From: Bigelowiella natans CCMP2755
Lineage: Eukaryota > Protista > Cercozoa
Length of the DNA: 64,000 nt
Assembly: GCA_000320545.1 (NCBI GenBank)
Contig: ADNK01002345.1
Coordinates: 11,173 to 75,172 of the forward strand
Direction: 5' to 3'
Below, piece by piece: positions 2,640 through 51,149 of this stretch. The notes below the pieces were generated by a model, which did not search any database, was not told where the DNA came from, and saw only the letters and a list, made by a program, of their open reading frames with translations. Position 1 is the stretch's first letter. Each line of letters starts with the position of its first letter. The translations under genes and the position numbers were made by a program.

Positions 2640-3590
2640 ATTGGTCACTGTCAACAACGAACAAGTGAACGCACACCCGATGCGCAGCACACGTAAGCAA
2701 GCAGCATTCTTGCATCCTCGGATGCACACATATCCATCTGGACATCAGTGAAGGCAAAAAGCAGCAAGTGAACGCATGCCCGATGTGCAGCCACATGCAC
2801 AGCATGCGTCAACAAGGAGCATGCGCTGCGCGATGCCATCAATGCGCACCAGCGTGCACTAGCTAGCTAGCTGGCTAGCTGGCATGCTGCATGCCCAGCT
2901 AGCCAGTAGCGGCGTCCAATTGTGTGCGACAGCAACAATAACAACGTTCGCGCGTCGCACATCATCACATCGGTCGGCTGAGTTTTGGGGTGCTTTGCGT
3001 TGAGCAAATGCACCGGACACGCTAGCACGCTGATCGACCCGCATCCTTGCTAGCTTGGTTCAGTGATCGACTGGAAGACCAAGGAAAACTGAGGGCTCGT
3101 TTCGCATCCGCCGGCCACGAGCCCCAGCGAAGGACAATCGAACCCAGCGACATGCACTCCCCTCTCCAGAGCTAGAGAGCTCTCTGAGCTCTGCACGCAA
3201 CCCAAGCCAACAAGCTCGCGTGCATGAACGAATGAATGCTAGAATGTCCGTCTTGAAAATTTGTAAAGTACTCCGTTTGGCTTCGTTGTGAGCTCAGAAA
3301 GCTGTTCGAACTCCACCAAGCTCCCGGAGTCGAGGAATGCCACCTTGTGGAACCTGTTTTTGAGAAAAGTCAATGGGATCCGTGTCGACGATGCACGACG
3401 ACGGCGAGGACGAAGACAAGGACCTGTGGATGTGCTGGAGCCTGTGGCATGTCATGACAACGGTGGTCTTGAGGCTGAAGATCACATCGTGGACCTTCTC
3501 ATCCGTCTCCCGGTCGACATTTGCGGTGGCTCTAGCAAGCTAGACAGGGGCGCGCGCGGGGGAGAAGATGCGAGCAGTGAAAAACTCTAG
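2640..3590. other. TpA-depleted, CTAG-rich intergenic domain 1
   Basis: Most surviving TA lies in CTAG. (CTAG)n run at 2859-2880. Many CATG/TGCA. Confidence 0.8.
3243..3572 (-). pseudogene. Decayed genomic copy of the last two exons and intervening intron of the neighbouring ABCC gene
   Basis: Aligns to about 6545-6880 (ATANVD..TDEKVHDVIFSLKTTVVM.CHRLQHIHR, intron, next exon) with substitutions and indels. The intron is retained, so this is a DNA-level duplication. Confidence 0.9.
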
Positions 3591-3964
3591 ACCCGAACTA
3601 AATTTCACCTAAAGAAAAATGCTCAATTTCCATGCCAAAAAGAAGGAATTCCAGCTACTACTTTTTACAAAATTCCGAGTCTAACTCCTCATCACTGCCA
3701 CTGCCGTTTTTGGGCGAAATTTCGAAACCGAATCGCACGTTTGCCCGAGTTTGTGCCGGCACGGAACGTGCACATACGAGGAGAGTGTCTCATCGCCGAC
3801 GAGGTCACTCCGCAAGTGGCTTCTCAGGCTTCTCTCGCTGATGGAAGGACATAACACCGCTCCAAGGAGAGGAGGAGGAGCTCAATAGTTATATTTCTTC
3901 TCCTCCGCCTCCTCCTCCTCCTCCTCCTCCTCCTCCTCCTCCTCCTCCTCCTCCTCCTCATCCC

Positions 3965-5329: not shown

Positions 5330-6450
5330 GCTGGCCACGGCATGGGCATGCGGTGTCGTCGCAGCAAACGCCCGGAACTTTGACGCACATGCAAGCTCGG
5401 ACAATGACAGCTAGCAGAATGGCTGCGACAGCTTCGCATCACATTGGATATCAACAATGCGCAGGCTAGTAGGAGATGTCAATGTTCACCGTGCTTCTGA
5501 TTCAGCCACCGCACCATGAGAGTGAGTGAGCAAATCATTTTGAATGCAAACTCGGTGTCATCAGTCTAACAGTCAGCACGTAGAAACGCGACTTTTGGAG
5601 ATGCGTTGGCACCAACATTCCCTGAAACTTTCATGCAATGGTTTAAACGCCACAGTCATCACTAGAAACGAATGATGATTCACATCGATCTAGCGACATG
5701 CATCTAGAGAACGGGAATTCATGATGTCGCATCACGTCATTGTTGTTCATCAATTCATCGTTGTCGCCAACAACCTTCATTGCGAGCAAATGATCGAACG
5801 CACAGCCGATCTAGCGATGCAGTGCATGACAGCAAGCAGCATGCGCACACATCTAGACATGCGATGCATCGGTGTCACGAAAGGTAGCGCCCTTCACCAC
5901 AACTAGACTCATAGATCGCTGGTACACATCTAGATGACACGTGCGCTGGTTGCCGCACGCTAAGTCAAATAATTAACCTTGAAAGTACGTGTGCGTCGGG
6001 TAGCAGTGCACATGCTAGCATGGATTGAATCCACACACTACACACAACATGCACAGGACATGCTGTGTCAATTGCCAGATCATGGCTAGCAGGCTGACAG
6101 GTGTCACTCCATTCTAGCACAGCTTGCACATCACAACCACTGAGCAGTCATGCAGACGAAGACATGAAAAGCGCCTGTCACAGGAAAATCTCTCAGCACG
6201 ACTCACCTAGCTATCTAGCTGTAGATGCATCAGACACACGATTCGCTTGGGCGTGCGTGAAAATTAAGGTGAAAAACCTGAAACATTCGCAAATTAAAAC
6301 ATGCGTGGGCTGCACCGCCATGCATTCCTGGATGCACATGCATGACGCAACCATGTGAAAAAATTCGGACCCGAAAAACATGTTGGCACTGATGATTCTC
6401 AACTGTGAAACCATTGCATGCATCTTAGTAGACACACACCATCGCTCATG
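5330..6450. other. TpA-depleted, CTAG-rich intergenic domain 2 (partial depletion)
   Basis: TA mostly in CTAG or CTA/TAG half-sites, between two convergent genes. Confidence 0.7.
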
Positions 6451-6454
6451 CCGA

Positions 6455-9400
6455 TCACGCGGCAACAGAAGACCGAGAGCACTCCCGCGCTCCGAGGGAC
6501 ACTGCTTCCTCCTCCTCATCATCCTCCCTCTTCTTTCCCATTGGAATGTTCGCCCGTCTAAAAAATTCGGAAAGTACTCCGTTTGGCTTCTTTGTGAGCT
6601 CAGAAGGCCGTCCGAACTCCACCAAGCTCCCGGAGTCGAGGACTGCCACCTTGTCGAACCTGTTTTTGAGAAAAGTCAATCGGATGTTTGTGCGGTCATT
6701 CAGAGATCATGTCGACGACGACGGCGAGGACGAAGACAATGACCTGTGGATGTGCTGGAGCCTGTGGCATATCATGACAACGGTGGTCTTGAGGCTGAAG
6801 ATCACATCGTGGACCTTCTCATCCGTCTCCAGGTCGACATTTGCGGTGGCCTAGACAGGGGGCGCGCAGGAGAAGATGCAAGAGAATGATCAGAATGTGG
6901 AGGGGGGGATGGGGGATGTGCTGCGAACAGAAATGGAAAATAGGAGCAGCTGCGGTGAGAGATGTCAAGCTATGCGGTGGTGCAAACTGTGTAGAAAATC
7001 GACAAATTAGGGAAAAGCCCGGAGAACGACCTCATCACAGAGGAGCAAGCTGGTAGTGTCTTGAGTGATGAGCGCCCTTGCCAAAGCTATAAGCTGTCTC
7101 TCACCAGCAGAGAAGTTCCCTCCCCCGTCGACAACCAAAAAGTCCAACTGACCCGGCAGCCCTCGTACCAATTTCTCAATCCCGGCATCACGCAAACACC
7201 TCCAGATGAGCTACACAGAACGACGCCAAATCAAACAATTTGCAAGAAGGATATGCGATTAGCCTCACGACGGTGAGGCGGTTAATTCGGAGAATTTGTC
7301 GTTTTACCTCGTCAGATTCAGTCTCAGACAGGTTATTGCGAAGGGGGCCGGAAAGCAAAACTTTGTATTTCCATGGTCAAAATTAGAGAGAGAATTTTGG
7401 GCAAGGGAGAGGGGGAACAGGATATTGAGACGAATACACTGCACGGGCGTCTTTGCTTTCATAATCAGTCATCATCTATCGCCATGTTCCACCACCATGA
7501 AATCATCATCACCATCATCCTTATCATCATCCATATTTACTATGATCTAACTCCCCCACTCCCCCCCCCCCCTTTCTCCTCGTCGCTATGCCCATCCATC
7601 ATCAGTCCCACAGCACCTGCGTCTTGATCAACCACTTGCACCTGGGTCCGCAGACGCTCAATGTGCATGCGATTGATGTCGTTGCCTCCGAGGAGGATGC
7701 GCCCCGCCTGGTGGAACAGTAACAGCACCAAAAACAACAACAATAACAAAGAAACGATGGTGAGAGTACGGAGGATGACAACTGCAGTCTGCAACGCATG
7801 CAACGAGCTCAACGCAACAGTACTTCTCCAGCTCTGCTGATGCTGTGTCCTCCGCATGAGAGAGCAAAGGAAGTTACCGATATCGGGTAGAGGCGGGAGA
7901 TAGAGGAAAAGACGCTCGATTTTCCACAGCCGCTACGGCCACACAGAGCAACTTTCTCGCCCCGAGCGATGTGTAAGGAGAGGCCGTTCAGCACTAGATG
8001 GTGGGAAATGATAGCGCGACAAACAAAGAGGTCATTAAGCATCAGTGGAGAACACCCGAGGTGTTGATTTCTACGCACAAAAACGCATGTAGTTAGTTTT
8101 CTCACCCACGGCTACCAGCGCCACCATTGCCAACGCTACTAGCATCATCATTAATATCATCAGAACCTATTGCTACTACTACGGACGCTTCTTATATAAG
8201 TAACCGTGAGTTTTGTCGAGTCGATATCGGAGGTACACTTCATCAAAGGTGAGCGTGGCGCCCCCCTTCCACCCCCCTCCTCCTCCTCCTCCTCCTCCTC
8301 CTCCTCCTCTTGGTCTCCTCCCAACTCCAACGCTAGCTAGCTCTTTGGAGTCATCTTCACATTCGTCGTCCTCCTCGAGAAGGTTTTTCATCTCAAAGTC
8401 GTCGGCAGAGCACGCCCCCCTTCCGACGCGGGAGTGGATGATGACGGACGCCTGTCTCCTTCCCCCCTCCTCCTCCTTCTCCTCCTCCTCGAGAGGATGG
8501 TTTCCTCGCCGAACATATTCACCAACCCGCTCAACGGAAACAAAGTCGGTTTCAATGTCGGCCAGCTCGCAGAAGAAGTGCATGATCATTCGCTGGAGTT
8601 GGGATGAGTAGAGCAACACCTTTCATTGGGGAGAACACAACTCTCAGGCGCAGCAGTACTTGTCGTCATTGTCGTCATTGTCGTCGTCGTCGTCGTCGTC
8701 GTCGTAGTTGTTTTGCGCGTGCGTTTTTCAAGACGTCAGCACGATTGTTTGATGTCTTTGTTTTGTTACCAGTCCCATCTGCGCCGGAGTGAGGCGGCCA
8801 GAATCCACGAGCAGCACACACACGACGCCCGACGAGATGTAGAGAACCGCTGACGCTTGGCAGATCAGAACCTGTAATAGTGATGAATGATGATGAGGAG
8901 GAGGAGGAGGAGGATAAGGATGTTGTGCACGTCATATTTCTTATGATCCCATTGTAGAAGAGGCTACCTGCGCCCATTTAATCACAGCTTCGTTCGCATA
9001 ACGAGCCCTTGCCATGGCTTCGATGAGACTGAGCGACTTCCTGAGGAACATTCTGTCGGATCCAAAGCCCAAGATGCAGTCCTTTCCGTCAATGGAGTCC
9101 GAAAAGTGCGCGTAGCACGGCGAATGTGCAGACGATTCGATGCGTCTCGCGTCACGGGAGGCGATGCGAGCACGGCGGAAAATGATCTTGAGGAGCGGGA
9201 TCAGCACAACCAGCGCCAGAGCGGAGAACGGTGCGTATGCAAACACCAGCACTATCATCGACCTACACGAATAAACCGGCGAAGGCGTTGGTCAGCGCAT
9301 AATACACAAAGACCCGCCCACACATAAACACACATGTATCTATCAGAGAGAAAATAGAGGGAAAGGGGAGGTGGTTCTTCCACGTACAAGAGCGTGAACG

Positions 9401-27080: not shown

Positions 27081-27609
27081 ATGCTAACGTTTAAATTGCT
27101 GAGCGATATTATTGATCTAAAGAAACAAAATTATGGACAGGACACCGCTACCAAGTATGCATTGTGGGGACTGGCATCTGTGTATTTTTTTGCTTCAATT
27201 CTTGTTCTCTATGGGCCATTCAAACCAAATAATCCAAAGGACGTTTCAAAGAAACAATGATTGGCTATGCTCACGAGAACAATGCAAAATGCAACATGTA
27301 CGACACAGTCACTTTTTCACACAATGAGCTCAGAACGCCTCGATCCTCTCAGGAGTAATCATTTGAGCTCCATGCCGTTCACATGCCATGTTGTGAGCGA
27401 ATGATTTTGTCGTACTGCAAAAGAATCGCACTCATCTAGACAGCATTGTGTTGATTGTGCGCGCACGGTTTCATGATTGCAACGATGTGCTTTTATTCAA
27501 TTTTGTGTTGTTGGACAAAAGCAAATCAACACTTTGTCCACACTGTGTACTTTGCAGTTCATGGACGCACAGCAGCACATGCATCATGCTAGCGTGATGC
27601 GCAGCTAAA

Positions 27610-28370
27610 CAGAACGCGCGTGCTAGCGTGGCACGCATGTCTAGATGTCTAGATGTGCTCATCGAACCACACGTCTAGACGTGCCTAGCGGGCTGTGTGC
27701 ACTGACTGACGTGGAGCAGATCTGATGCAGAGACGTGGTTTTCTGTCACCATTTTTGCATTTGAAAGCTGCCGTCATCAATGAATGCTGACACTAGCCGT
27801 CTAGCTGTGCTGTGCGTGTGCCTGCTGGCTAGCTCTGCTAGGCAGCTAGAGCTGCGGGTTTGCGTGTTCGATTTGTTCTTGATGCATTGAGAACAATCAA
27901 AGGAGCACTCGTCGGAGTTTGACACGTCCAACGGCATTTCCACGGGTGTTCCCATCGCAGGGTTCACCGTGCTCGATCGTTGATTGATCATTGATGATCA
28001 TTGTTGGTTCGTGTTCGTTTCGACGCTCCGGAAGGAAGTGCGCACTTGAGACTTGCAGTGCTAGCCAGCAAGCTGGAGATGCCTGGAATGTCAAACGCAC
28101 AGAGGACGTGCCCTCCAAACTTCAAATTGGGGGACGAACACGCTGGCCTTGACGAACACACACCGAAATCTAGCCACACGGACACAGCCACTGAACGAAC
28201 AAGTGAATGAAGCTGCAGTTCCACAGGAGTGATTGAAAAGATCACAGGTCACGCTGACTCATGAATGAATGAATGAATGAAGCAATTCCACTTCAAGCAG
28301 CTGAGAGGATCATGGGTCACGCTGACTGTGTGTGATCTCCCCCGTCCACACCGGGACGCTGACGCTCATG
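27610..28370. other. TpA-depleted intergenic domain 3
   Basis: Hand count: 12 TA in 760 bp, all 12 inside CTAG. Confidence 0.9.
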
Positions 28371-28479
28371 ATATTCAATGCCGGGCAATCCCGCAGAATT
28401 CCCCGATATTTACAGCTGAAGCTTTTAACCGAGATGGCTAAAGATCAGGGGAATTTAGCTTAGCAGATGTTTTTCTAAC

Positions 28480-29669
28480 TTGTCGCAACTGGCGAAAGGC
28501 CATAAATTTCGGACGATTAATCGTGCAATGGAGGCTGCCGCAAGTGCGCGCGCTAACTCCCACCCCACATCATCCTCAAATGATGAAACGGGGAAGGCAA
28601 CCTCGACGTCCTCACAGTCCGCTTCCATCAACGCCCAACCTTCATCCTCGATAGAATCTAGGCTCAAGGCATTAGATGGTGAGAAAAAGTTTAGAAGGGG
28701 GAGATTTTGCCTATCCAGTGTGCTCATCTCATTTTTCGATGCGGGGCATTTTGGCGGAATGCATTTAATATCGAAGAAATTTTAACGCTAGCAAAAAATG
28801 ATTTGAGTTAGGAATGTACAGTTTTTCCCAATAACCCTTAAAAATCCCTCTCACAACTTCATTCAATGATGAATTATCTGACGACGTTCGCCTGCCATTG
28901 CGATATTTAGCATTCGTATCGAATCCAAGTTCGTCCCAAAACGCGACCATTCCGGCAGAACTGAATGACATAATCAACGACATCGCAAATATTGGGAGTT
29001 CGCGGTGAGACAGGCATTTTAACTTTTTATCCATTCGGTGAATAAACTCGCTATTTCTTCCATAGATATCCCTGGAATAATCTGAAAGTATTGCTCAAAA
29101 GCAAGTTAGAAGAGGTGCTGGAGTTGTATAGAAAAGAAAAGTCCAAAACGACAAAAATAGACGGGGAAGACTTTGAAACTCGACATGATCGGGCCCTGAA
29201 GTATATATCGGATTTTAAGAGGTATCCGAAAGTACGTCATTTGGTTGCCTTCTGTGATTACAACCAACGTTATTTGCAGGCCGCCTTTTACGTTACAGAG
29301 GATGTGTGAGCTTCTCAAAGAACCGAAGCGATATTACAGTAATATCGAGAAATTTTTCCTAGCATTTTCAAAGGTGGGATTCTTTATTGATTACCCATTG
29401 ATTGCTGTAATTTGAGTGAGTATACATATTTGTAGATGGTTTGTGGCATTACGTATCCGGCAGAGGACTATGATGGAGAAAGGGGCGGATCAAAAAATGA
29501 AATGAAGATAGAAAAAACGAAGGAAGATACAATAGAAAGCCAAAAAGAAAAGGAGGATGTGGCGGTTAGCTCACCTTCGGAAAAGAAACCAAATCAAGAA
29601 GAGGAGCTATCAACTGAAACAACAATGGCAACAGAACAGGAACCCAAGCAAAATGAAGCCAAAAGATGA
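28480..29669 (+). CDS. PPP4R2: Protein phosphatase 4 regulatory subunit 2; start approximate
   Basis: Spliced exons give YPWNNLKVLLKSKLEEV and RPPFTLQRMCELLKEPKRYYSNIEKFFLAFSK (the PPFT.QR.CELL signature), followed by an acidic tail. Confidence 0.85.
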
Positions 29670-33456: not shown

Positions 33457-33753
33457 GTGTTTCATGCAATCAAATGCATGTTCTACTAGATGTTGTTTCG
33501 GTCTTGACTCATGAGTTGAATGTCGCGCATTTCGCGCAGCAGCAGTGTGTGTTTCCTTCTCATCGCGAGTCAATCTTTTCGTTTCGTCGTCGCGCATATC
33601 ACTGCATGTGATGTGTTTCATGCAATTAAATGCGCATGCTGTTTCGGTCTAGCTGCAATGTATGTCGCGCATTGTTTCGCGCAGCAGTTCGTGTTTTCTT
33701 CCACATGCAGCTGTCTTGTCAGATGTCAGTCTTTTCGTTTCGTCGTCGCGCAT
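33457..33753 (+). repeat. Diverged tandem duplication (~150-bp units)
   Basis: GTGTTTCATGCAAT.AAATGC...TGTTTCGGTCT...TGTCGCGCATT...TCTTTTCGTTTCGTCGTCGCGCAT is present twice. Confidence 0.8.
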
Positions 33754-33759
33754 CATTAT

Positions 33760-34480
33760 GCTAGCATGCTGGCATGCATGCTAGCATGGCAGTGAGCTGG
33801 TTCCTCAAGCGACGTTGATGTGTCATCACATGTGCACATGCATGGCGTGCAAATGGGCAAGAAAGCACAACACCACACGTGCATCAGCAGCTAGTGCTAG
33901 AGTGGGTGCATTGCGTTTGTGCATTTTGCGCGGCTCAGGCGGCGCCAGCAGCGATGATGCACAAAATGCTACGTCATGACCTGCTGAATTCATTTGCGAC
34001 CATGACTTTTGCTGATGCATGTCTGTGATGACTTGCACCATCCACGCGTGGCACCATGTGCTAGCTTGCTAGCTTGGGGTGGGTCCCACTTTTGCACACC
34101 ATCGTTTTGCCACGACTGCAGGACCACATGTGCTGCATGCGATCTAGCGATGATGGACATTGTTGCGATGCAACATGATCTAGTGATGTGCACACTTGGA
34201 CATGATGTCACTGCATGCACTACGTGTGACATCACTGTGTCCATCACTGCGTGCGCTAGTGCGTGCTGCGCACAAGCTACAAGGCACGGCGTGCGCGCGG
34301 ATCGGACAACTAGACAACCAGGACAAGCAGCACATTTGGACATGCCAAGTGGATCCCATGCAACAATGATGCACAACAAGACACATGTCCAGTTAGGCAA
34401 TGCCAGTTTGATTGCATTGCTACATGCAGGACACAGCTAGACAGCTAGATGGACAATCACAGCATGACTAAGCTCAGTAG
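33760..34480. other. TpA-depleted intergenic domain 4
   Basis: TA only in CTAG or half-sites (CTAC, CTAA, TTAG, GTAG). Confidence 0.85.
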
Positions 34481-35559: not shown

Positions 35560-36999
35560 ATGTCGAAAGCGGACGACAAGGTCGATTGTTCAAAAGTTGA
35601 CATAAGTTGACATATGCCCTTTCTGTAATGACAATTAGAAAATGTGTCTCGTCGACTTTAATTTATCAAAATGGATTCATTAGACGCGTCATTTAGATTC
35701 AAGTCATCATGCTGCTCTCATAGACAAGCCAAGCGGGGATTTCACATAGATAATCATTATTTTTTCAAATAACAGAAAACGGTCAAGTCAGACATTCATA
35801 AGCTCACTGAGCAGCTGCACAAGCTCAGAGCAGTAGACACGTATGATGAAGCAGATCAACCTCTTGGGATAGAAGCTAAGGCTTCAGGAATTTCAGGCCC
35901 ATCCTCGTGCGTTTTAAAACAGAGGTTGGAATATAATAAGAAATGTATGGCATAATATTAATACGATTCACGTACAACGATTATTTCTATGAAGATTGAC
36001 ACGAGTAACGTAAACGATTTTTCTATTCTTAAGACGCGTCCTCCGTGGACACTTCGGAAAAATCTATGCAATGCATTGGGCACAGGGCCGAAACCACAAT
36101 CTAGTATCTGCATCTCAAGATGGAAAGTTGATCATTTGGAATGCCTTCACCACGAATAAGATCCATGCGATTCCACTACGATCCTCTTGGGTTATGACAT
36201 GCGCCTATTCCCCGTCCTCTAGATACGTTGCTTGTGGAGGTTTAGATAATTTGTGCTCTATTTTCGCGGTTCCCGAGACGGGAAAGGAAGGACCAAAGAA
36301 TAAGGTGAACATTTTTATTCTTTTGTGGATCTAAAAAATTAATCTAATCCATTTTTTTCTCATGATTGGTAGGTATACTGCGAGCTTGCTCAACATGAAG
36401 GATATCTTTCATGTTGCCGCTTCATAGATGACAAGAGAATTATCACATCATCCGGGGATTCTTCGTGCATTTTGTGGAACGTAGAACAGCGTAGTCCTGA
36501 GTTACAATTCAATGATCACACAGGAGACGTGATGAGTGTCTCAATAATGAAGGACACCCACCTCTTCGTTTCAGGATCTTGTGATTCAATGTCAAAACTG
36601 TGGGATTATCGTGAAAAAAAAGCATGTGTCATGACTTTCCCAGGACATGAATCTGACATCAATTCAGTAGATTTCTTTCCGGATGGTAACGCATTTGCTA
36701 CTGCTTCGGACGATTCCACTTGTCGCCTTTTTGACATAAGGGCTTATAGACAGGTGCAGCGGTATGCTAATGAAAAAATTCTATGCGGAATTACATCGGT
36801 CGCTTTCTCGAGATCTGGGAAGCATTTGTTTGCAGGATACGATGACTACAACTGCTACGTATGGGATACAATAACTGGAGTCAATACTCAACAACTTGCT
36901 GGTCACGAAAATCGTGTCAGTTGTTTAGGTGTACATCCACAAGGACAAGCATTGTGCACAGGCAGTTGGGACACGTTGTTGAGGGTGTGGTCAGTATAG
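35560..36999 (+). CDS. GNB: Heterotrimeric G-protein beta subunit (4 exons)
   Basis: Exons give MSKADDK|KTVKSD...|[15 protein letters not shown]...[34 protein letters not shown]...[14 protein letters not shown]...[12 protein letters not shown]...[11 protein letters not shown]. Confidence 0.97.
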
Positions 37000-37198
37000 T
37001 ACATCCCTACACTTGTAGATCTTAATTACACGATCAAGATCAATAATGTTCAGCACGTAATGACATAGACGAATTTGTAGCATAACATGATCTAGACATT
37101 CTCTTGCATGCCAAAAGGGTGCAACAGACAAAGAGAGACAATGGCAGACAAAACGATGCAGATGATGAATTGCACACACACACATGCACACACACATG

Positions 37199-37230
<32 letters not shown>

Positions 37231-37289
37231 CTAGACAAGCTAAATGTAGCTACAATGGGCTTTCTATTCGAGTTTGTCCTTTTGTTTGC

Positions 37290-38805
37290 GCTGTTGAGTG
37301 TCATGGAATGCCGCGACTGAAATTTCATGCGAGATGCAAAGCTAGAAAGAGTGATCTCAACTTGTGGGATTGCTGGAGCCTGCGCTTCACGCTAGCGCTG
37401 CACACAAGCATGCTAGCATCGGATGTGACTGTGACCACTCTAGCACTGCTAGCTAGCTAGACTGCGCTCAAATGGCAAACACCGCATGCTAGCATGGAAA
37501 GCGTTTGATTGGCAATCTAGCAATGCCTAGATGCTAGAATGCGCGATGTGTCAAGCTAGCTAGCTAGCAAGCTGCAAATTGTTGATGATCAACCATGCTA
37601 GCATGCCAGCTAACTAGTCAGCATGTGCTGGCTAGCTGGCAAGAAATGTTCAATTGGAACAAAACACGTCGTGCTGGCTAGCTCTCAGAGCTCACCCAGC
37701 TAGCCAGGCTAGCAGGGCTCAGAGCTGGCGTGCTAGCCACTAGCTAGCTAGCTAGCGTGATTGCGCACTTTGCAATTCCAAATCAGCTTGTTCAATTGGA
37801 ACAAAGCTGTTCAATCAGAAAACATTGCAACACGTTCTAGCGTTGCGATCTCGCAGAGTTTTGTTTTGTTCGCTACCAGGCTTGCCAGCTTGTTCGCATC
37901 GATCAGAAATGAACGTTCAATTGGAAAGGCGTGCCAGAGCTAGCAGAGTGCTGGAATGTCCAGAAGCGTGTCACACTGGCAGCACGTCTAGCTAGCTAGA
38001 GGCGTTGTAGCGTGTCATGACTGGATGATGAAGATGTAGCGTTGCGGTGCAAGTCTGGAAGTGGCGGCTGGACAAGGGCCACAGAGCCAGATTGGTTGCG
38101 CTAGCCATGTCAGGCAAAGGGCCAGCGAGGGTGTGCGAGGAGGTTCGAGTTCTTGAGAGGTTTGACAGTCCAGCAGTTGAGAGGATGCGCATCATGTTCA
38201 ACCACCGAGTTCACACTGAAAGCCAACCAAATGCTGCCAGTGCTGCTGGTCATGTGAGCATGTGACAAGCATGTTCTTCCTTCGTTGCTTCTTCGATGCA
38301 TTTCCAAAGAAAGTGTGACAAGACACTTGCAGTGTGCGAAGTGCAGTGCCTCGAACTGGCTTCAGTGAGGACTGAAAACTGTCTAGCTGTGCCTCGAACT
38401 GACTTTGGTGGGCCAGTGAGAACCAACTAGTGAAACAAAAAGGAATCAAGAATGGCACGTCCATTCCCAGTTTCATTGTCTTTTGTGCCTGATCTTTGCC
38501 AACTTCAGGACCATGCCAGCATGACTTCTCTGTGCTTTTTGAAAATCCACGTTTCTGAAAACGTTGCAAGACGTTTGCAGATCACGAACATGCACGAAAC
38601 GCAGTGCCTCGAACTAGCTCCAGTGAGCAAAAGCGGTGGTTTCAGCTCACGAGCAAAAACCTCGAACAATCTCGATGCCGCACGGTCGGTTTCCAAGATC
38701 TTTTGCGAGGGAAAATCTGGCAAAAGATCCATTTTGTCCCCTCGACAATCAAAGCACTCGAGATTTCCACTTGAATTGAGAGACAACATGAGTGTCCTGT
38801 GGTCA
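37290..38805. other. TpA-depleted, CTAG-rich intergenic domain 5
   Basis: Hand count: about 34 of 38 TA are in CTAG. The other four are CTAA, CTAC, GTAG and GTAG. Confidence 0.9.
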
Positions 38806-38893
38806 GTATCAAGAGCATTCATGAACTACGACAAAAGAGCCCTGCGAGCAGTGTCAAACCCATCATTCGTCTCGGCGTCTCGGCTATCTAAAG

Positions 38894-40030
38894 ATGGGGT
38901 GCGGACCAAGCCGTACCCAGATCAAAGCGAAAGATGATGCTGCAAGTTTGGTGGTGCTTTACGCATATCTCGACCGAATTGGAATCAGCTTTTCGAAAGC
39001 ACAGGCTTTAGTCGAGAAAGTAACGCCGCCAAATCTCGAGGACCTCACACTGCTCCTGCAGAAGCACATCACATCTGTCCCTTTTGAGAACCTGGGCCAG
39101 CACGAACACTCTGCCTCTGAGGAGCTCAAAGGGAAGGTAGAATTTCCTGCGTGTGCAGCACGGAATCCGTCACTTCACGTTCACGAGTCTCTCAAGAAGA
39201 TTGTATTCGATCGGCGTGGGGGATTCTGCTGGGAAATCAACTTCGCCTTCGCGTGGCTCTTGCGAAGACTGGGATATTCTGTGCGACTTGGGAACTCAAA
39301 CGTAATTAAACCTCAGGGAGAACCTGTACCTGGGCATCTATGCATCTTTGTTGATGGACTCAGTCGATCCCCTGTACTCGTAGACCCGGGGTTTGGGGAT
39401 GCACCGAGAATTCCGATTCCAGTGGTGTACGGAGCCAGAATGAAAGATACCATGATAGGAGACGAGTATTCTGTCATCGCAAATGATGCTTCCAACTACT
39501 CTCAAAGCAAGTCCCAGGGAGAACGCTTTGACAGTGTCCTGACACGCTCACGGTTCCGGGGCCTTGCAAATTCTCCTATGGTGGACTTAGTCGGGATGGA
39601 CAAGCATCCATCCATTCCAGCGCAGATGTCGACTCCCGAGGCTGTATATCTCTTCAATTCGAGAGATGAATGTAAAATGGATTGTGAAGAGTTTCGATTC
39701 GGGCTGGCATCTGTACTCACAAAATCAGAGCAGAACTTCTTCTCACAAAAACGATTCTGTTTTCTAGCGACAAAGGAAGGATACGTATTTCAAGGCAAGG
39801 TGTACATAAGCAACTGTTAGTATAGAGCAATAATTTCAATATTTCCATTTTTCTAGTGAACCTATACGTATCTATACATGTAAATGTTGTCGCGCTTTTG
39901 ATATTACACGCATACGTGTCAGAATTATTTCAAGATTGTCAACCACGGGATCGAAAAGCATCGTGAGGAACTAAAAGACGAAGCTGCATATCGAAGATCG
40001 TTGATGAAAAATTTTGGAGTTAAATTGTAG
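38894..40030 (+). CDS. NAT: Arylamine N-acetyltransferase family protein; exons 38894-39799 and 39923-40030
   Basis: Motifs YLDRIG, VPFENL, RRGGFCWEIN (catalytic Cys), GH, LVDPGFG. The second exon ends ...MKNFGVKL*. Confidence 0.9.
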
Positions 40031-40031
40031 C

Positions 40032-40073
40032 TAAACGTTAAATGTCCTTGTAAACGTTAAATGTCCTTGTAAA
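40032..40073 (+). repeat. Perfect 19-bp tandem duplication just after the NAT stop codon
   Basis: TAAACGTTAAATGTCCTTG x2. Confidence 0.9.
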
Positions 40074-40299
40074 TTCTACCATCAACTTTACAGTAAAATT
40101 GTAGATGCTGCCGCAGAATGACGAAGGTGTTGCGTTAGTCACTTTAAAGATAGTATTGACTCCGCGTGATGAAGACAACAAAACTGTCACAGTAATTTTA
40201 AATAAATGACAACTTGCATGATGTAGAGAACGCTGACATGGATCGCTGTGACTCCTGGTGACCGCAGACACAACATCTCTCAATGTGTGCCATAGAATG

Positions 40300-41331
40300 T
40301 CATGCGATCGATGGCACCTGCGGTCTGTGCGATGGATCGAGCGCACCGCCATGTTGACCAGCGACATGGGTGTGTGGTGTGTCATTCGACACTCAATGCA
40401 CAGCGTTCCTCTTGAGGAAAACAAAAAATCACTCATTCTGGAACGATGATGAGCAAACGGAGTTCGAAATGAGATCGTTAGTGCAGCGACAAAGTTGGTT
40501 AGCACGCACAGAAGCTAGGCCGCCGAGGGAGCAACACTAGAGCTAGACGCACGTGTTGTTGAGCCCACGTTGCACACCTTGTGTTTTTCACACGCACCTG
40601 ATCGAATGCATGCTGTTTCATGCTGCTGCACGTGTGGGATGCGCGATGGCAAGCAGTGCTCGAACAATGATGAACTAGTCAGCAGACATGCACTCTAGTC
40701 GAATACGCACCTCCCCAGCTTGGTTCATCATCATTTTGACACACTCATTTTCGCAGATGCTCCCCGCTGCACACCAGCACAGTCTGAGAGATCAATGTTC
40801 ATCTTGGGTGGCACACGTTTCGCATGGCCATGCTGGCATGGAACGGGTGAACAGATGGGTGCACTCAAGAACGGCATTCTTGAGTGGAGAGTGGCTTCAG
40901 AGCGGGAAAGATCCGATCACTGTGTTCGAGGCAGCGGCCGTGTGAGTGTGAAACGGAGATGACACCTTCACAATTGTTGCTTTGAAACAGTCGCGGCAAA
41001 CATTCATGGACACTGCATGGCATTGTGCATTCAAGCATGTGAGTTGTTGTTGCTTGCATTCGCCATTTTGGCAAGTTGCCACATCGTCGTCCATCATCGT
41101 GATGAACGAGCAACCTTCTCACACGTTGAAGTGCACGTTGAAGTCAATGTCATCAACGAGGCTGAATGCACATGGAAACACATGGGAAAAAATGACATGA
41201 CAAACTTGAGAGATGTGTGAGATCGACACAATGAAGTGATGAAACTCTTTCAATTGTCATCTCTCCAAGCACGTGCTTCTTCGAGCATTCCTCTGGCCCA
41301 AACGGGCCCGGTCAGCCTTTTCTCCATCACG
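40300..41331. other. TpA-depleted intergenic domain 6
   Basis: No TA found between 40706 and 41331 (~625 bp). Upstream TA is mostly CTAG/TTAG. Confidence 0.9.
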
Positions 41332-42079
41332 TACCGAATTTTTGTTCAATCATTCCATCAGTTCAATTTTTCGCGCTCAAGTTCGAAGTGTGCCACATGA
41401 AACGAGGCACGCGTCTGCAAGAGATCTAGTCTTGAACACTCAGCAGCTGCAAAGATTTTCATTCTTGCGAAAAGCTGTCAAGTAACGTAGTCTTCCAAGA
41501 CCAAGTTTCAGCGTCAACACAGGGGGTTTTCAGGGTTCGGCGAAGATCGGTTGCTCCTAAGATTCACGCTCGACATGGAAACATTAGATGTAAGAGTAGC
41601 AGAATATCTATGCCTGCGTATTGCTCCAACAACCAAAAAAATGCAAATTGCCCTTGACATTTTGATAAAATTCATCTAAATTTGTGCTTCATTATGTATG
41701 AACTCTGGCATTGAATTGATGCTTGGTCTTGCATGATCTTACATTACTCTTACACACGATTCAAGACAAAATCGTCCAAGACGAAGTCACGCATCAGGAA
41801 GTGGACGATGAAGGCGAGCATCGGGGACTTTCGTCAACCGTCATACGTTTAAACCTGCTTTCGTGGAGAACAAACGGCGTTTTGGAAGTCCTGCTTCGAC
41901 CAAGATTCTCTTCACAGGCTCTCACTTTTCAAACTGCGCAAAATCCGTCCGCCCTCCTTCTTTCGCAAGGTGGAGGAACCCGCTGCGCACCCCACATTTT
42001 GTGTCTTCCCAGTGATCTCCAATTGTTGTCGTATGCTTCACTGATGGATTTCCTTAAAATATGGTTTTAGAAGAATAAT

Positions 42080-47844: not shown

Positions 47845-48825
47845 CGAACGTTGGACGCGATGCCATGATTGCCTTTTTTCACCCACCTCGACACGTCAGA
47901 GGAACACGTTTAACTCACCATGAGTAGATCAACAGCGGTCGGGAGAGAAAGCATTGAACTGCATTTCCCCACTGCATGTTCCTTGCAAACAATGATTCTT
48001 AGCATTCCCCTCCCTTATCGTCCCCGCCTTTTCCTTGCTCCTCCTCCTCCTCCTCCTCCTCACCGCAGATGTACTGCTGCTGCAAGAAACCTGTCGGTGG
48101 GAAGAAGGGTACGACTCCTGCCTTTTTTTGGGCCGTTCTTTTGCAGCAGTACTGACTCATGTGCTGTGAGTTGCGTGTGCGCGAGAGTGTTCAAGTATCA
48201 TCATCTATCATCACGACTACTACTGTACTCATCATCACGACTAACACTGTACTCATCATCACTCTGCGTTTGCGTAGTAGAGGAAGTCAAGGAAAGCAGC
48301 GTCGTTTCTGAGGTAGTAGTCATCCTAAAGGTTAGAAAAAGGTGCTCTTTCGTCACGATAGCAGGGTGGGGACGCCGTAGCAGAGCTGTAAAAGACGACC
48401 ATGGCGAGAGTAGAAATCTTTGAAGGAAAATGTTGCAACGGGTCTTTGCCCTGATGAGCGCAAAGACGAGGCTGATGAGAGATGTCAGAGTCCGCTCGTT
48501 TGTAACTATTCCTTTTTTTTTTGAATGATGCCCAGAACTCCAAGGCCGAGAAGTCCGTTCAGTCTGTGGTGTGAAGCGAGAAATCCCAGAGCTGGAAGAC
48601 GGGTAGTATGCCGTGTGTTTGTCCTTGGAACGACTAAGAAGTGCTTGGCGTTGTGGATGAGATGCTGATGACTTTTGGGGGCTTCCACGCGTCTTGACTA
48701 TGGCACAGCGAGTGTTGTTGATCCAGCACCTCTATATATTAAACTAGGCTCAGATACTGCTTGATAAAGACAGAGAGCCTTTTCAGTGCTTGCATGTATT
48801 GCCGTATATACATATAGATATGTAC

Positions 48826-48864
<39 letters not shown>

Positions 48865-49618
48865 GTACATGTATTATATGAATTTATGCAACGTGCATTT
48901 TGTAGACATGTGCATATGCAGTCATTATGTGTGAGTGTGTGTTTGTGTGTGGTGTGTGCGTTTGGCGTACGACGATGAGCGATGTACGTGTGCTTTGGCG
49001 TGCAACGCATGACGAGCTTGATGACTTTGATGATGAGTAGTGCAACAATGCACATGACGTAGCGTGTATTCCTGACTACATGGCAATAGCCAGCATGCAA
49101 CTCTAGACATAGTTGGCGACTGTTGCATCTAGCTAGGCTCATATGCAGCAACACTATCCAGATACCATGCACGTATACATGTGTTAGCATGCATGTGTGA
49201 CACGATTATTGATCGAGGACTACTGTGTAGACTACACATGCACAAGTGTACCTATGTGTGCATGTAGTCATGCTAGCATGCATGCTATCTAGCTATGTAG
49301 CGCATGAGCGACTAAGCACACACATAGATGCTGCACGTTCTATTCATGACAATCTCGAACCTGCGCTGCACTGGCGTAGGCAGAGCGAAAGCTGGCGCGC
49401 CTATCAATCTCTCATGGGCTCTGCTACACGCACATGCAAGGCACTCGATCACAGCGCACGTAGTCATGTGTAATGCTCCATACAATGACGACCACGCCGA
49501 CGACGCGCGAAAATTGTTCTTTACAGTGATCTTTAGCATGACAAACGATTCAAGACAAATATATCATTTACATCTTATGCATTGATAGACGTCACAGCCA
49601 CCAAAATGACGTTCATCA

Positions 49619-50719
49619 TCACAGTTCGGCATCTTTGCCAGTCAGGATCTTGAAGATCTCCTTGTACTTCTCCATTGCCTTTTCGCAAACCTCCTTGGGA
49701 AGGGGAACCCCCACCCCCGTCGCGGTCGAAGTTGATGGAGATGAGGTAGTCACGGACGTACTGCTTGTCGAGTGAGTCTTGCTGCTGCCCGACAACGTAT
49801 TTCTTCTTATCCCAGTACCGGGAGCTATCAGGCGTAAGCACCTCGTCGCCAACTATGAGTAGACCCTCGAGCAGGCCCATCTCAAACTTCGTGTCAGCGA
49901 TGATTATTCCCTTCGACTCCGCGTACTTCACAGCTTCGCCGAAAAGCTTCAGGGCGGTCTCTTTGAGGTCTTTGAAGTTGAATCCCTGTTTTTTCAAGAT
50001 CCCTGCGGCCTGCTCCTCGGTGATGTTCTCATCGTGATCTCCGAACGCCGCCTTTGTGGCAGGGGTGAATATAACAGAAGGAAGCTTTTGGCAGTTTCGG
50101 AGGCCCTCGGGGAGCTTGTGGCCGCATACAGCGCCGCTCTTCTGATAATCTTTGAAACCAGAGCCAGTAAGGTATGCGCGACAGACAGCCTCGACGGGAA
50201 TCATCTTAAGCTTCTTTACGAGCATACATCGGCCCTTAAGTACCTCCTTGTGCTTCTGCACTTCCTTCGGCATCTTATCGATGTCGCAGGTGATCATATG
50301 GTTTTTGACACCGCATTTTTCCTCCAGGTAGTTGAACCAGAACTCGGAGAGCTGGTTGAGGATCTTGCCCTTACCTGGGACTGGGGTAGTCATGACGCGG
50401 TCGAAGGAAGAGATGCGGTCGGACACAACGAAAAGAGACGTCTTCTCATCAACTTCATACACATCCCTTACTTTCCCCTTGTAGACCTAAGAAATTTTCC
50501 CGGGTTAGATTCATTGACTTTGCAGCGAGGTGGTGTGTATTTCAGAGGGAGACATTATGTGGTGTGTGTGTGTGTGTGTTTGTGTTTGTGTCTGTGTTGT
50601 GTGTTTGGGACGGCGATAGTGTTCAGCCACATAGCACGCAGCACCTTTTTGAGGCCTTCGAGGTTGGTGTCGAGCACTCCCTTTGCAAAATATTCTGTGT
50701 TTTCTTTTGCCTCGGCCAT
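49619..50719 (-). CDS. ADE1: SAICAR synthetase (phosphoribosylaminoimidazole-succinocarboxamide synthase); one intron; apparent frameshift near 49720
   Basis: MAEAKENTEYFAKGVLDTNLEGLKK|VYKGKVRDVY...SDRISSFD...GKGKILNQLS.FWF...FTPATKA...HDENI...IIADTKFEMG...DEVLTPDSSRYW...DKQYVRDYL. The C-terminus PLPKEV..KY.EIF..LTG is in another frame. Confidence 0.95.
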
Positions 50720-51149
50720 GATTCAAGCTTTGGATTCTGGGGTGGATTGGTGTTCTCCTTTTGTGAGATACTTTTAAATTATTATTTCCGAAGCTCTCAG
50801 TCTTGAATATTGCAATAAACTCCTCCTTTAATTACTAAAAGCAGGATATTTTATGAATTTGATCCTGCTCTCAGGAGAAATGTAGCACTTATCGCGGTAT
50901 GTCAGCCTTCCCGAAAGGGAATTGAAATCTGAACTACCGCATGCCATCTGTTATGAGATGCGACATGCAAAATCAGCATTTTCTTTTCAAAATCGGGTGG
51001 CATTTTGTACTCCCCTCGTCCGACTACTGTCCAACCCCCTCCTGCATCGGTGGATTTTCGTGGGAAAACTCCGTCGTGACGGATTCTGGGAGATTTCGCC
51101 CAAAAAACGCCCTTTCTCCTCGGTGGAAAAGTCAGTACATGTACACGAG

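Follow-up and report, generated by a model that had tools for sequence, protein, structure and literature searches.

[quoted passage not shown] Its SAICAR synthetase is 100% identical to a JGI protein, and the nearest named relatives come from Chlorarachnion, Amorphochlora, Norrisiella and Lotharella. Between genes, several domains have almost no TA dinucleotides other than those within the word CTAG, and are called TA-purged below. The features are listed here in order (strand given for genes).

2695–3609: TA-purged domain, about 190 bp past the stop codon of a 725-aa ORF (329–2506, + strand)
5582–6211: TA-poor, CTAG-rich domain, less pure (10 non-CTAG TA and 11 CTAG per 630 bp)
27549–28406: TA-purged domain (2 non-CTAG TA and 13 CTAG)
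33662–34277: TA-purged domain (3 non-CTAG TA and 9 CTAG)
36032–37117, + strand: 3′ part of a G-protein beta (WD40) host gene (Pfam WD40_Gbeta, E=9e-87 on 36373–36996)
37173–37227: (CA)n microsatellite between transcript end and domain start (TRF, period 2, 27.5 copies)
37252–38826: TA-purged spacer between the G-protein beta and N-acetyltransferase genes (6 non-CTAG TA and 34 CTAG per 1575 bp)
37449–37460: (CTAG)3 array with ACTG on either side (scar-flank analysis)
37556–37567, 37740–37755 and 37988–37999: arrays similar to the preceding one (scar-flank analysis)
38297–38640: copy of a dispersed unclassified repeat, with matches in TA-purged domains across the genome
38383–38390: 8-bp insertion scar (CTAG plus duplicated CTGT) in the repeat copy, from comparison with 11 other copies
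38894–40209, + strand: N-acetyltransferase (NAT) host gene between two purged domains (Pfam Acetyltransf_2, E=1e-21)
40225–41482: second TA-purged spacer, including the 628-bp TA-free run 40705–41331, beginning 16–49 bp beyond the NAT transcript end

The G-protein beta gene shows a GT..AG intron (36303–36370) in an RNA contig, and its transcript contigs from two runs stop at 37116/37117. The RNA contigs of the NAT gene cover 38906–39797 and 39921–40176/40209, on either side of a GT..AG intron at 39798–39920. Two rounds of Pfam searches on 20 ORFs of the window named the G-protein beta gene only, Rfam gave no match on 37000–41600, and a search for contigs encoding the 725-aa ORF returned none on record. 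For gene calling across the window, a codon-usage scan and 5′ splice-site counts were both too weak. Assembly contigs break at the (CA)n microsatellite. One DNA run, taken as contigs, differs from the window at two positions, neither of them TA (41535 and 41620).

The depletion of TA is extreme. A recount reproduces the figures of the initial annotation: 34 of the 38 TA at 37290–38805, where base composition predicts 96, lie in CTAG, as do all 12 at 27610–28370, and 40706–41331 contains none (expected 40). For three further intervals that it had placed at 2.6–3.6, 5.3–6.4 and 33.8–34.5 kb, purer cores were located inside or near them, at 2695–3609, 5582–6211 and 33662–34277, respectively. The interval at 48.9–49.5 kb, offered as a weak example, shows no depletion (TA o/e 1.03) and merely 5 CTAG. 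While the mean gap between non-CTAG TAs in the whole window is 22.7 bp (~23 bp), the longest runs lacking them are 38038–38806 (770 bp), 27607–28371 (766 bp) and 40705–41331 (628 bp). Simple Poisson probabilities are 1.5e-13 for 626 bp without TA, 8e-24 for no more than 4 non-CTAG TA across 1516 bp, and 4e-24 for 34 CTAG given the rate outside. At the domain edges, TA density steps from ~4 to <0.8 per 100 bp over 50–100 bp, and the intact (TA)n runs, described earlier as kept next door, are indeed placed outside the domains by TRF. Genome-wide (91.4 Mb), the analysis drew on pattern counts and on two sets of 29 kb each, one of unselected DNA and one surrounding repeat copies. Every other readable contig carries similar purged domains of 0.6–2.7 kb each, and in 93 kb of unselected sequence the purged fraction is ~10%.

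Across 23 kb of domains, TA has an o/e of 0.18, or 0.06 once CTAG is masked, and CA/TG one of 1.6; CpG o/e is 0.78–0.83 (~0.8) compared with 0.86–0.91 outside, so that TG/CA is abundant and CpG still common, as first described. A forward simulation in which all TA of the neighbouring AT-rich DNA were converted gave 1.74/1.78 for CA/TG (observed 1.65/1.66) and 0.74/0.77 for CC/GG (observed 0.74/0.69), with matching rises in CATG, TGCA and GCAT. Conversion of TA to TG/CA reproduces the whole composition of the domains: CA/TG in excess, CC/GG in deficit, and CATG, TGCA and CACA abundant. Depletion of CC/GG had been considered as a second mutational signature and was dropped, being a by-product of TA conversion in the simulation. 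Strand-specific (R-loop or template-strand) editing is not supported either, since CA and TG are symmetric in five of the six domains (137 vs. 154 in 37252–38826).

The domains are also silent. RNA depth is 0–8 in 37252–38826 and 40225–41482, the dispersed repeat excepted, compared with 45–67 in the flanking genes (RNA contigs, two studies), and raw RNA reads outside the repeat number 0 in the two domains. Transcript contigs that stop at 37117 and 40176–40209 are followed by domains beginning at 37252 and 40225, respectively; on its other side, the first domain reaches 38826, ahead of a transcript contig that begins at 38906. The purged domains fill the RNA-silent gap from ~20–150 bp past one transcript end to the start of the next transcript. 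They are ordinary spacers between host genes (here the G-protein beta and N-acetyltransferase genes) and mostly single-copy. For example, 40225–41482 is single-copy in the genome except for its last ~97 bp, and 27549–28406 is mostly unique, with short weak matches to one 150-bp part only.

The direction of change can be read from the dispersed repeat, which makes up ~340 of the 1575 bp of the first spacer (38297–38640). It has at least 68–74 matches in the genome, its word depth in DNA reaches 16805 where the baseline is ~89 (~190-fold), and RNA reads come from its opposite strand. Sites at which CA, TG and TA are mixed among copies point to ancestral TA, and at 7 sites the family consensus still has the TA that has turned to CA or TG in individual copies. 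Among 17 copies, transitions were found at 37 of 148 TA bases and at 62 of 1352 other A/T bases (odds ratio 6.9, p=1e-14), whereas transversions are equal, 0.034 per base at TA and 0.033 elsewhere. CpG transitions number 1 of 88, and transitions at the C of CA (or the G of TG) amount to 0.035 per base, not above other C/G.

The initial annotation had proposed a regional process turning TpA into TpG/CpA and had expected a TA to TG/CA excess in polarised repeat substitutions; this excess is what the repeat family displays, and the scar counts given below show it too. Its exclusion of fungal RIP and 5mC decay also stands, as C to T changes are not elevated, CpG transitions are rare and TA is depleted. 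The process, however, is not undescribed as had been supposed: Mettrop et al. (2026, bioRxiv 10.64898/2026.01.13.699255) measured it in 15 mutation-accumulation lines of the same species. They reported a regional hypermutation confined to TpA, which changes to TpG/CpA; in two integrated viral regions the de novo rate was ~6e-7 per site per generation, and every event was a transition at TpA. These regions, one a 186-kb giant-virus insert and the other a virophage insert of 25 kb, still contain 3.3–9.2% TpA; TpA-low windows are high in CpA+TpG, and the main target is transcriptionally silent. The process was described as defence-like and possibly of ADAT2 type, an ADAT2 homologue (ADAT2-like adenosine deaminase) being proposed. 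CTAG, insertion scars and gene-end boundaries are absent from the text of the preprint.

It is very probable that the purged domains are RNA-silent inter-gene spacers in which this TpA-specific hypermutation has run almost to completion, with CTAG superimposed separately. A to G changes on either strand of TpA would yield TpG or CpA, near saturation in the spacers.

Then, what marks a spacer as a target? We suggest, tentatively and with less than even confidence, that the default substrate of the mutator may be any RNA-silent DNA, and not foreign DNA as such. It would edit as far as the poly(A) sites and the starts of transcription, would have purged about a tenth of the genome in sub-3-kb spacers too fine for the published 1-kb-window scan and, together with the CTAG-leaving element, would set essentially all long intergenic sequence, while transcription or its chromatin would shield genes and introns. 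Long intergenic DNA would then be stripped of TAA/TAG stops, of TATA-like words and of TA target sites. The other candidate, which is how the preprint reads its targets, is targeting by origin: the spacers would be remains of old transposons or viruses, hypermutated as foreign DNA on arrival, and would coincide with transcript ends only because insertions survive between genes. We consider it rather unlikely, although several observations favour it: in the interval lie a dispersed repeat of greatly raised word depth, with antisense RNA, and dozens of transposon-type scars, and transposase and reverse-transcriptase domains are enriched in TpA-poor coding sequences (Mettrop et al., 2026). Furthermore, at least one gene-end spacer is unpurged: at ~48.75–49.5 kb, downstream of SAICAR synthetase, TA is normal and a (TA)28 run intact, and consequently RNA silence alone may be insufficient (though this spacer may be transcribed). 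Against targeting by origin, the domains begin 20–150 bp from transcript ends and stop just ahead of the next transcript, and the purged share of the unselected sequence is large. The single-copy spacer 40225–41482 contains no recognisable repeat, which is a weak test, since saturated mutation would erase homology and so hide a foreign origin. A fragment of host origin in the domain 2695–3609 is TA-poor as well, namely 3248–3574, a diverged copy (85% identity) of part of the ABC-transporter gene at 6554–6882, but the sample is very small, with 3 informative non-CTAG TA sites only (2 lost, 1 gained). It should be noted that the purged spacers are too small for the 3-kb cluster scan of the preprint; under its cut-offs, 1 of 64 fixed 1-kb windows passes here and clusters of at least three are lacking.

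The surviving TA require an explanation of their own. CTAG density is 14–22 per kb in the domains of the window vs. 2.0–2.3 outside, a 7–11 times enrichment, which argues that CTAG was gained and not retained. Identical 4-bp flanks surround 81 of 399 CTAG (20%), compared with ~1% for control tetramers; the signal is confined to flank length 4, with none at 2, 3, 5 or 6, and belongs to 36 of 85 CTAG (42%) inside domains vs. 4 of 116 outside (p=4e-12). The commonest duplicated 4-mer is CTAG itself. Such flanks point to an 8-bp insertion composed of CTAG and a second copy of the 4 bp next to it. One insertion could be polarised: at 38383–38390 this repeat copy reads CTGT-CTAG-CTGT, where 11 other copies have CTGT once. 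Arrays such as (CTAG)3 at 37449–37460 are interpreted as one scar placed within another, older one. Most simply, the scar would be the excision footprint of a putative cut-and-paste element, a stereotyped insertion that would keep re-introducing TA, and the scar CTAGs would then pass to CTGG/CCAG via the same TpA process.

The fate of these words could be followed by pattern counts. Genome-wide, the scar CATG-CTAG-CATG occurs 3828 times intact, 1013 times with CTGG/CCAG and 127 times with TTAG/CTAA, so these scars have decayed to CTGG/CCAG 8 times as often as by C to T; variants with T to A or T to G number 224 and those with C to A or C to G 118, reversed-pattern controls giving 3–18. Repeat copies likewise have CTAG changed to CCAG or CTGG, and in CTAG-poor purged domains, which lack fresh scars, 3 CTAG remain where 12.1 are expected (~4-fold depletion). 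In the repeat family, TA is kept at 23 of 37 CTAG sites vs. 11 of 37 CTAA/CTAC sites; by pattern in 14 copies only, CTAA keeps TA in 7 and CTAG in 10, which is the expected direction and not significant. CTAG may decay 2–3 times more slowly than other TA contexts and is at most the slowest one. The CTAG words appear to be young 8-letter insertions, most copies of which would be recent, decaying like other TA.

Could CTAG instead be truly immune, the mutator being blocked by C/G flanks and CTAG being the remnant of the original sequence? Nearly all surviving TA do lie in CTAG, and the repeat family keeps more TA there. Moreover, none of the 71 background (“rest of genome”) mutations of Mettrop et al. 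(2026) is in CTAG context, and by our tally of their Table S2, which has 231 hypermutations, the 3′-G class (TAG + CTA) comprises just 20 of 206 events, without normalisation for opportunity. Within this class, TAG (3) and CTA (17) are asymmetric (p=0.003), probably for coding reasons. Immunity is nevertheless very unlikely in view of the density in domains, the exact 4-bp duplications and the polarised insertion, the predominance of CTGG/CCAG among decayed scars and the depletion where fresh scars are lacking; an absolute rule is already contradicted by the repeat copies with CCAG or CTGG. The earlier statement that the process spares CTAG is not supported: CTAG is enriched by 8-bp insertions and decays nonetheless.

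Selection in place of mutation, with TA signals (TATA-like words, poly(A) signals, transposon TA targets) being harmful in spacers, is very improbable indeed. The domains do adjoin gene ends and promoters, and the population size of the alga is probably very large. However, transitions alone are raised at TA while TA-destroying transversions are not, mutation-accumulation lines, where selection is minimal, produce the identical TA-specific, transition-only change de novo, and selection acting on every TA over 600–2700 bp is implausible. A single repeat family, intrinsically TA-poor, as the source of all the domains can practically be dismissed: ~340 bp of the interval do come from a dispersed family occurring in many purged domains, but the six domains of the window show no mutual similarity, two are essentially unique in the genome and the family consensus has TA sites that copies lost. 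Both outcomes that the initial annotation had named as able to overturn its proposal, one shared repeat family and polarised substitutions free of TA to TG/CA bias, thus fail to appear, in favour of the proposed regional conversion.

Under equilibrium assumptions, and with the consensus of related, non-independent copies taken as ancestral, the long-term average rate in the spacers would be ~3e-9 to 1e-8 per TA base, ~20–70 times the background A:T to G:C rate, which would be enough to keep TA near zero despite its re-creation from CA/TG. The viral-region rate is excluded for the spacers at present, since ~3300 CTAG hits would be expected in the experiment (extrapolated from 93 kb) and none was seen.

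An A-to-G editing of nuclear DNA that is heritable and specific for one dinucleotide is remarkable, yet already reported for B. natans. What is added here is its end-state in ordinary spacers between housekeeping genes, whose edges coincide with transcript ends and so bear on the question of foreign DNA vs. silent DNA as the target. The apparent sparing of CTAG, otherwise to be mistaken for enzyme specificity, is corrected. In addition, with TAA and most TAG stops gone, TA-purged DNA shows long spurious ORFs on both strands (e.g., 33993–34436 and 34006–34437), and the number of unannotated “TpA-poor genes” may be overestimated for this reason.

Several known systems resemble parts of this pattern. 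Fungal RIP likewise acts regionally on non-genic or invading DNA, as a hypermutation by context-specific transitions that leaves a dinucleotide signature, but it turns the CpA of duplicated DNA into TpA and TA content goes up, whereas here TA is lost without an increase of C to T, and the change reaches single-copy DNA. In 5mC decay at CpG, a self-complementary dinucleotide is also lost by transition on either strand with enrichment of TG/CA; there CpG is lost, whereas here TpA is lost and CpG kept. A-to-I editing by ADAR/ADAT enzymes shares the A to G change and the preference, known from ADARs, for a 5′ T (U) beside the edited A; the substrate here is genomic DNA, the outcome is heritable, and the enzyme is a candidate only. 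The CTAG scars recall cut-and-paste excision footprints, such as those of Tc1/mariner elements (a target duplication plus a few terminal bases), in that a 4-bp duplication brackets a constant CTAG and insertion recurs in non-genic DNA, also into older scars; they are unusually uniform and abundant, with 3828 for the flank CATG alone, and their donor is putative. Closest are the domains of Mettrop et al. (2026), which agree in species, in the restriction to TpA to TpG/CpA, in strand symmetry and transitions only, in low TpA with high CpA+TpG, and in transcriptionally silent DNA. Their targets are viral, while those described here are spacers of 0.6–1.6 kb between host genes, which are already saturated and for the most part single-copy, with transcript ends as their limits.

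The initial annotation had described intergenic intervals in which TA occurs almost exclusively within CTAG, and its counts for three of them were reproduced exactly by a recount of the window: 38 TA dinucleotides in 37290-38805, 34 of which are within CTAG, 12 in 27610-28370, all within CTAG, and none across 40706-41331. The mean spacing of non-CTAG TA in the whole window is 22.7 bp, while the longest stretches without it extend for 770, 766 and 628 bp; the chance of such depletion, based on a simple Poisson model, is 1e-13 to 1e-23. Segmentation of the window by TA density yielded six main purged domains:

2695-3609, purged domain
5582-6211, purged domain
27549-28406, purged domain
33662-34277, purged domain
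37252-38826, purged domain
40225-41482, purged domain

CTAG holds 85 of the 117 TA inside these domains, and each other NTAN tetramer occurs no more than five times there. The interval at 48.9-49.5 kb, which had been thought to share the pattern weakly, is without depletion (TA observed/expected 1.03). Purged domains make up 10% of 93 kb of unselected sequence. Only one of 64 fixed 1-kb windows meets the cut-offs of the scan by Mettrop et al. (2026, bioRxiv 10.64898/2026.01.13.699255), and no cluster of three such windows is present among the 64; consequently, this class of spacer domains lies below the resolution of the published scan. At 33993-34436 (-) and 34006-34437 (+), and likewise at 28458-28781, the two strands hold coincident ORFs of 108-148 aa, because TA-purged DNA is devoid of TAA and of most TAG stops. 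Gene predictors may call such ORFs, which could explain part of the 324 unannotated "low-TpA CDS" of the preprint.

The domains do not belong to one repeat family: a domain-versus-domain comparison found no similarity among those in the window, 40225-41482 is single-copy in the genome, and 27549-28406 is nearly so. One dispersed unclassified repeat was located as follows:

38297-38640, copy in the window
4117-4189 of L001, a sequence outside the window
near 1500 of L005-L013, further sequences outside the window

Built around a core of about 75 bp and also present in a longer form of about 235 bp, this repeat carries reiterated motifs of the type GTGCCTCGAACT..CAGTGAG, occurs in every retrieved purged domain as well as in one randomly chosen contig, reaches a DNA word depth of about 190 times the baseline, and has no match in Rfam. 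Elsewhere in the window, a 261-bp unit is present twice at 99% identity (282-796) within an intronless 725-aa ORF (329-2506) without a Pfam match. Part of an ABC-transporter gene (6554-6882) has an 85%-identical copy at 3248-3574, within a purged domain, and this copy carries an additional 9-bp insertion with CTAG relative to its parent.

The proposed conversion of TpA to TpG or CpA, including its direction, is borne out by three lines of evidence. The first is the polarised spectrum of genome counts for single-base variants of CATG-CTAG-CATG, which itself occurs 3828 times genome-wide, compared with 7 for the reversed control. TA->TG/CA variants number 1013, against 127 with C->T or G->A in the outer positions, 224 for T->A or T->G, 118 for C->A or C->G, and 3-18 for controls. 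The second is an alignment of 17 copies of the dispersed repeat, whose consensus keeps seven TA sites. Transitions were found at 37 of 148 TA bases and at 62 of 1352 other A/T bases (OR 6.9, p=1e-14), whereas transversions were equal in the two classes and CpG transitions amounted to 1/88. Several sites mix CA, TG and TA among copies, for which an ancestral TA is the sole explanation. The third is a forward simulation, in which all TA of neighbouring AT-rich DNA were changed randomly to CA or TG. The simulated CA/TG values of 1.74/1.78 are close to the observed 1.65/1.66, and the increases in AA/TT, CATG, TGCA, CACA and GCAT match observation, with CpG and GpC somewhat lower than in real domains. 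A second process behind the CC/GG deficit was considered and rejected, since the simulation reproduces it (0.74/0.77 versus 0.74/0.69 observed) as a by-product of TA conversion. Within domains CA and TG are symmetric, in agreement with the strand-symmetric experimental spectrum, which argues against a mechanism limited to the template strand.

CTAG had been regarded as spared by this process; instead, it is enriched through insertion and subsequently decays to CTGG or CCAG. These words are not left over from the original sequence. In the window's domains there are 14-22 CTAG per kb, compared with 2.0-2.3 per kb outside. In all sequence examined, identical 4-bp flanks occur at 81 of 399 CTAG compared with about 1% for other tetramers, a signal limited to flank length 4; the proportions are 36/85 in the window's domains and 4/116 outside. 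Within 37290-38805, 16 of 34 CTAG have exact 4-bp flanks, and most of the remainder sit in arrays of the type (CTAG)3-4. Insertion of a scar, CTAG plus a duplicate of the adjacent 4 bp, into an older one accounts for these arrays. Of the dispersed repeat, 11 further copies lack the scar CTGT-CTAG-CTGT seen at 38383-38390, which is thereby polarised as an insertion. The simplest source of the scars would be the excision footprint of a putative cut-and-paste element. That CTAG decays after insertion is shown by the 1013 CTGG/CCAG variants of the CATG-flanked scar; CTGG and CCAG have identical flanks in 4-5% of cases, and in the three purged domains that lack fresh scars CTAG lies 4-fold under baseline (3 versus 12.1 expected) and other TA 33-fold. 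Several observations hint that CTAG may be the slowest TA context. TA is kept at 23/37 CTAG sites versus 11/37 CTAA/CTAC sites among the non-independent copies of the repeat family, and at 10/14 versus 7/14 for a CTAG and a CTAA site in a genome-wide pattern count. A raw hand tally, not normalised, gives a 3' G in 20 of 206 Table S2 events (Mettrop et al., 2026).

The region 36000-41999 was overlaid with raw RNA reads and with the RNA contigs of two studies; the first domain there follows this gene:

upstream of 37252-38826, + strand, G-protein beta subunit gene, RNA contigs stopping at 37116/37117

The transcript end is followed by a (CA)n run and then by the purged domain from 37252, which stops at 38826. 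For the N-acetyltransferase gene, transcript contigs begin at 38906 and the transcript end lies at 40176-40209; the second domain begins at 40225. RNA depth is 0-8 inside domains and 45-67 in genes, except over the dispersed repeat, where it reflects the many copies; RNA reads from this repeat are antisense to the neighbouring genes. On the mean of 17 domains, TA density falls from about 4 to <0.8 per 100 bp across 50-100 bp, an average that is partly circular because TA density defined the domains. A 2025 DNA run shows two non-TA differences from the reference, at 41535 and 41620 (G>C, A>C), just past the second domain. A counter-example is the spacer 48750-49530 past the SAICAR synthetase transcript, whose 3' end is near 49534: its TA content is normal, with 5 CTAG and an intact (TA)28 at 48805-48861, and any targeting rule must account for it. 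The SAICAR synthetase matches a JGI protein at 100% identity and proteins of Chlorarachnion, Amorphochlora and Norrisiella at 76-81%, which identifies the genome as that of Bigelowiella natans. Marine metatranscriptome transcripts of this gene (L014-L018) are 99.4% identical to 49534-50782, so close relatives of the sequenced strain occur in natural samples and could serve polymorphism tests.

The process had been called undescribed, but it is both real and already published, as the mutation-accumulation results of Mettrop et al. (2026) demonstrate. In 15 lines of B. natans, two integrated viral regions took 231 of 302 single-nucleotide mutations, all A->G or T->C with one exception and placed by the authors on TpA; in Table S2, 4 of 211 events in the larger viral region have ATG or ATT as the surrounding triplet. 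The viral-region rate is about 6e-7 per site per generation versus 3.5e-10 elsewhere, hypermutation is confined to some lines, and an ADAT2-like deaminase acting in defence against foreign DNA was proposed (Mettrop et al., 2026). Seven of nine de novo insertions of at least 3 bp in Table S2 terminate in ACA (e.g. TGACA, CCAACA, TACACA, GCATTACA), and none of the nine is a CTAG+4 scar. The viral-region rate equates to about 5.7e-6 per TA base, at which the approximately 93,000 CTAG in purged domains would have received about 3300 experimental hits; CTAG mutations account for 0 of 71 background mutations in Table S2. When the scar spectrum is scaled to the GC->AT rate of the preprint, we infer a CTAG loss rate of about 3e-9 per TA base, and the balance of creation and loss suggests a value between roughly 6e-9 and 2e-8 at other TA. 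With either estimate only one or two experimental events would be expected, consistent with observation. Therefore, the spacers resemble a saturated end product, reached at a low average rate or in rare bursts, and not regions now hypermutating. The preprint text mentions neither CTAG nor intergenic spacers of the host nor boundaries at gene ends (Mettrop et al., 2026). What is new here, relative to the published system, is the host-spacer setting of TA purging, the domain boundaries at transcript ends, and a quantitative account of CTAG gain and loss.
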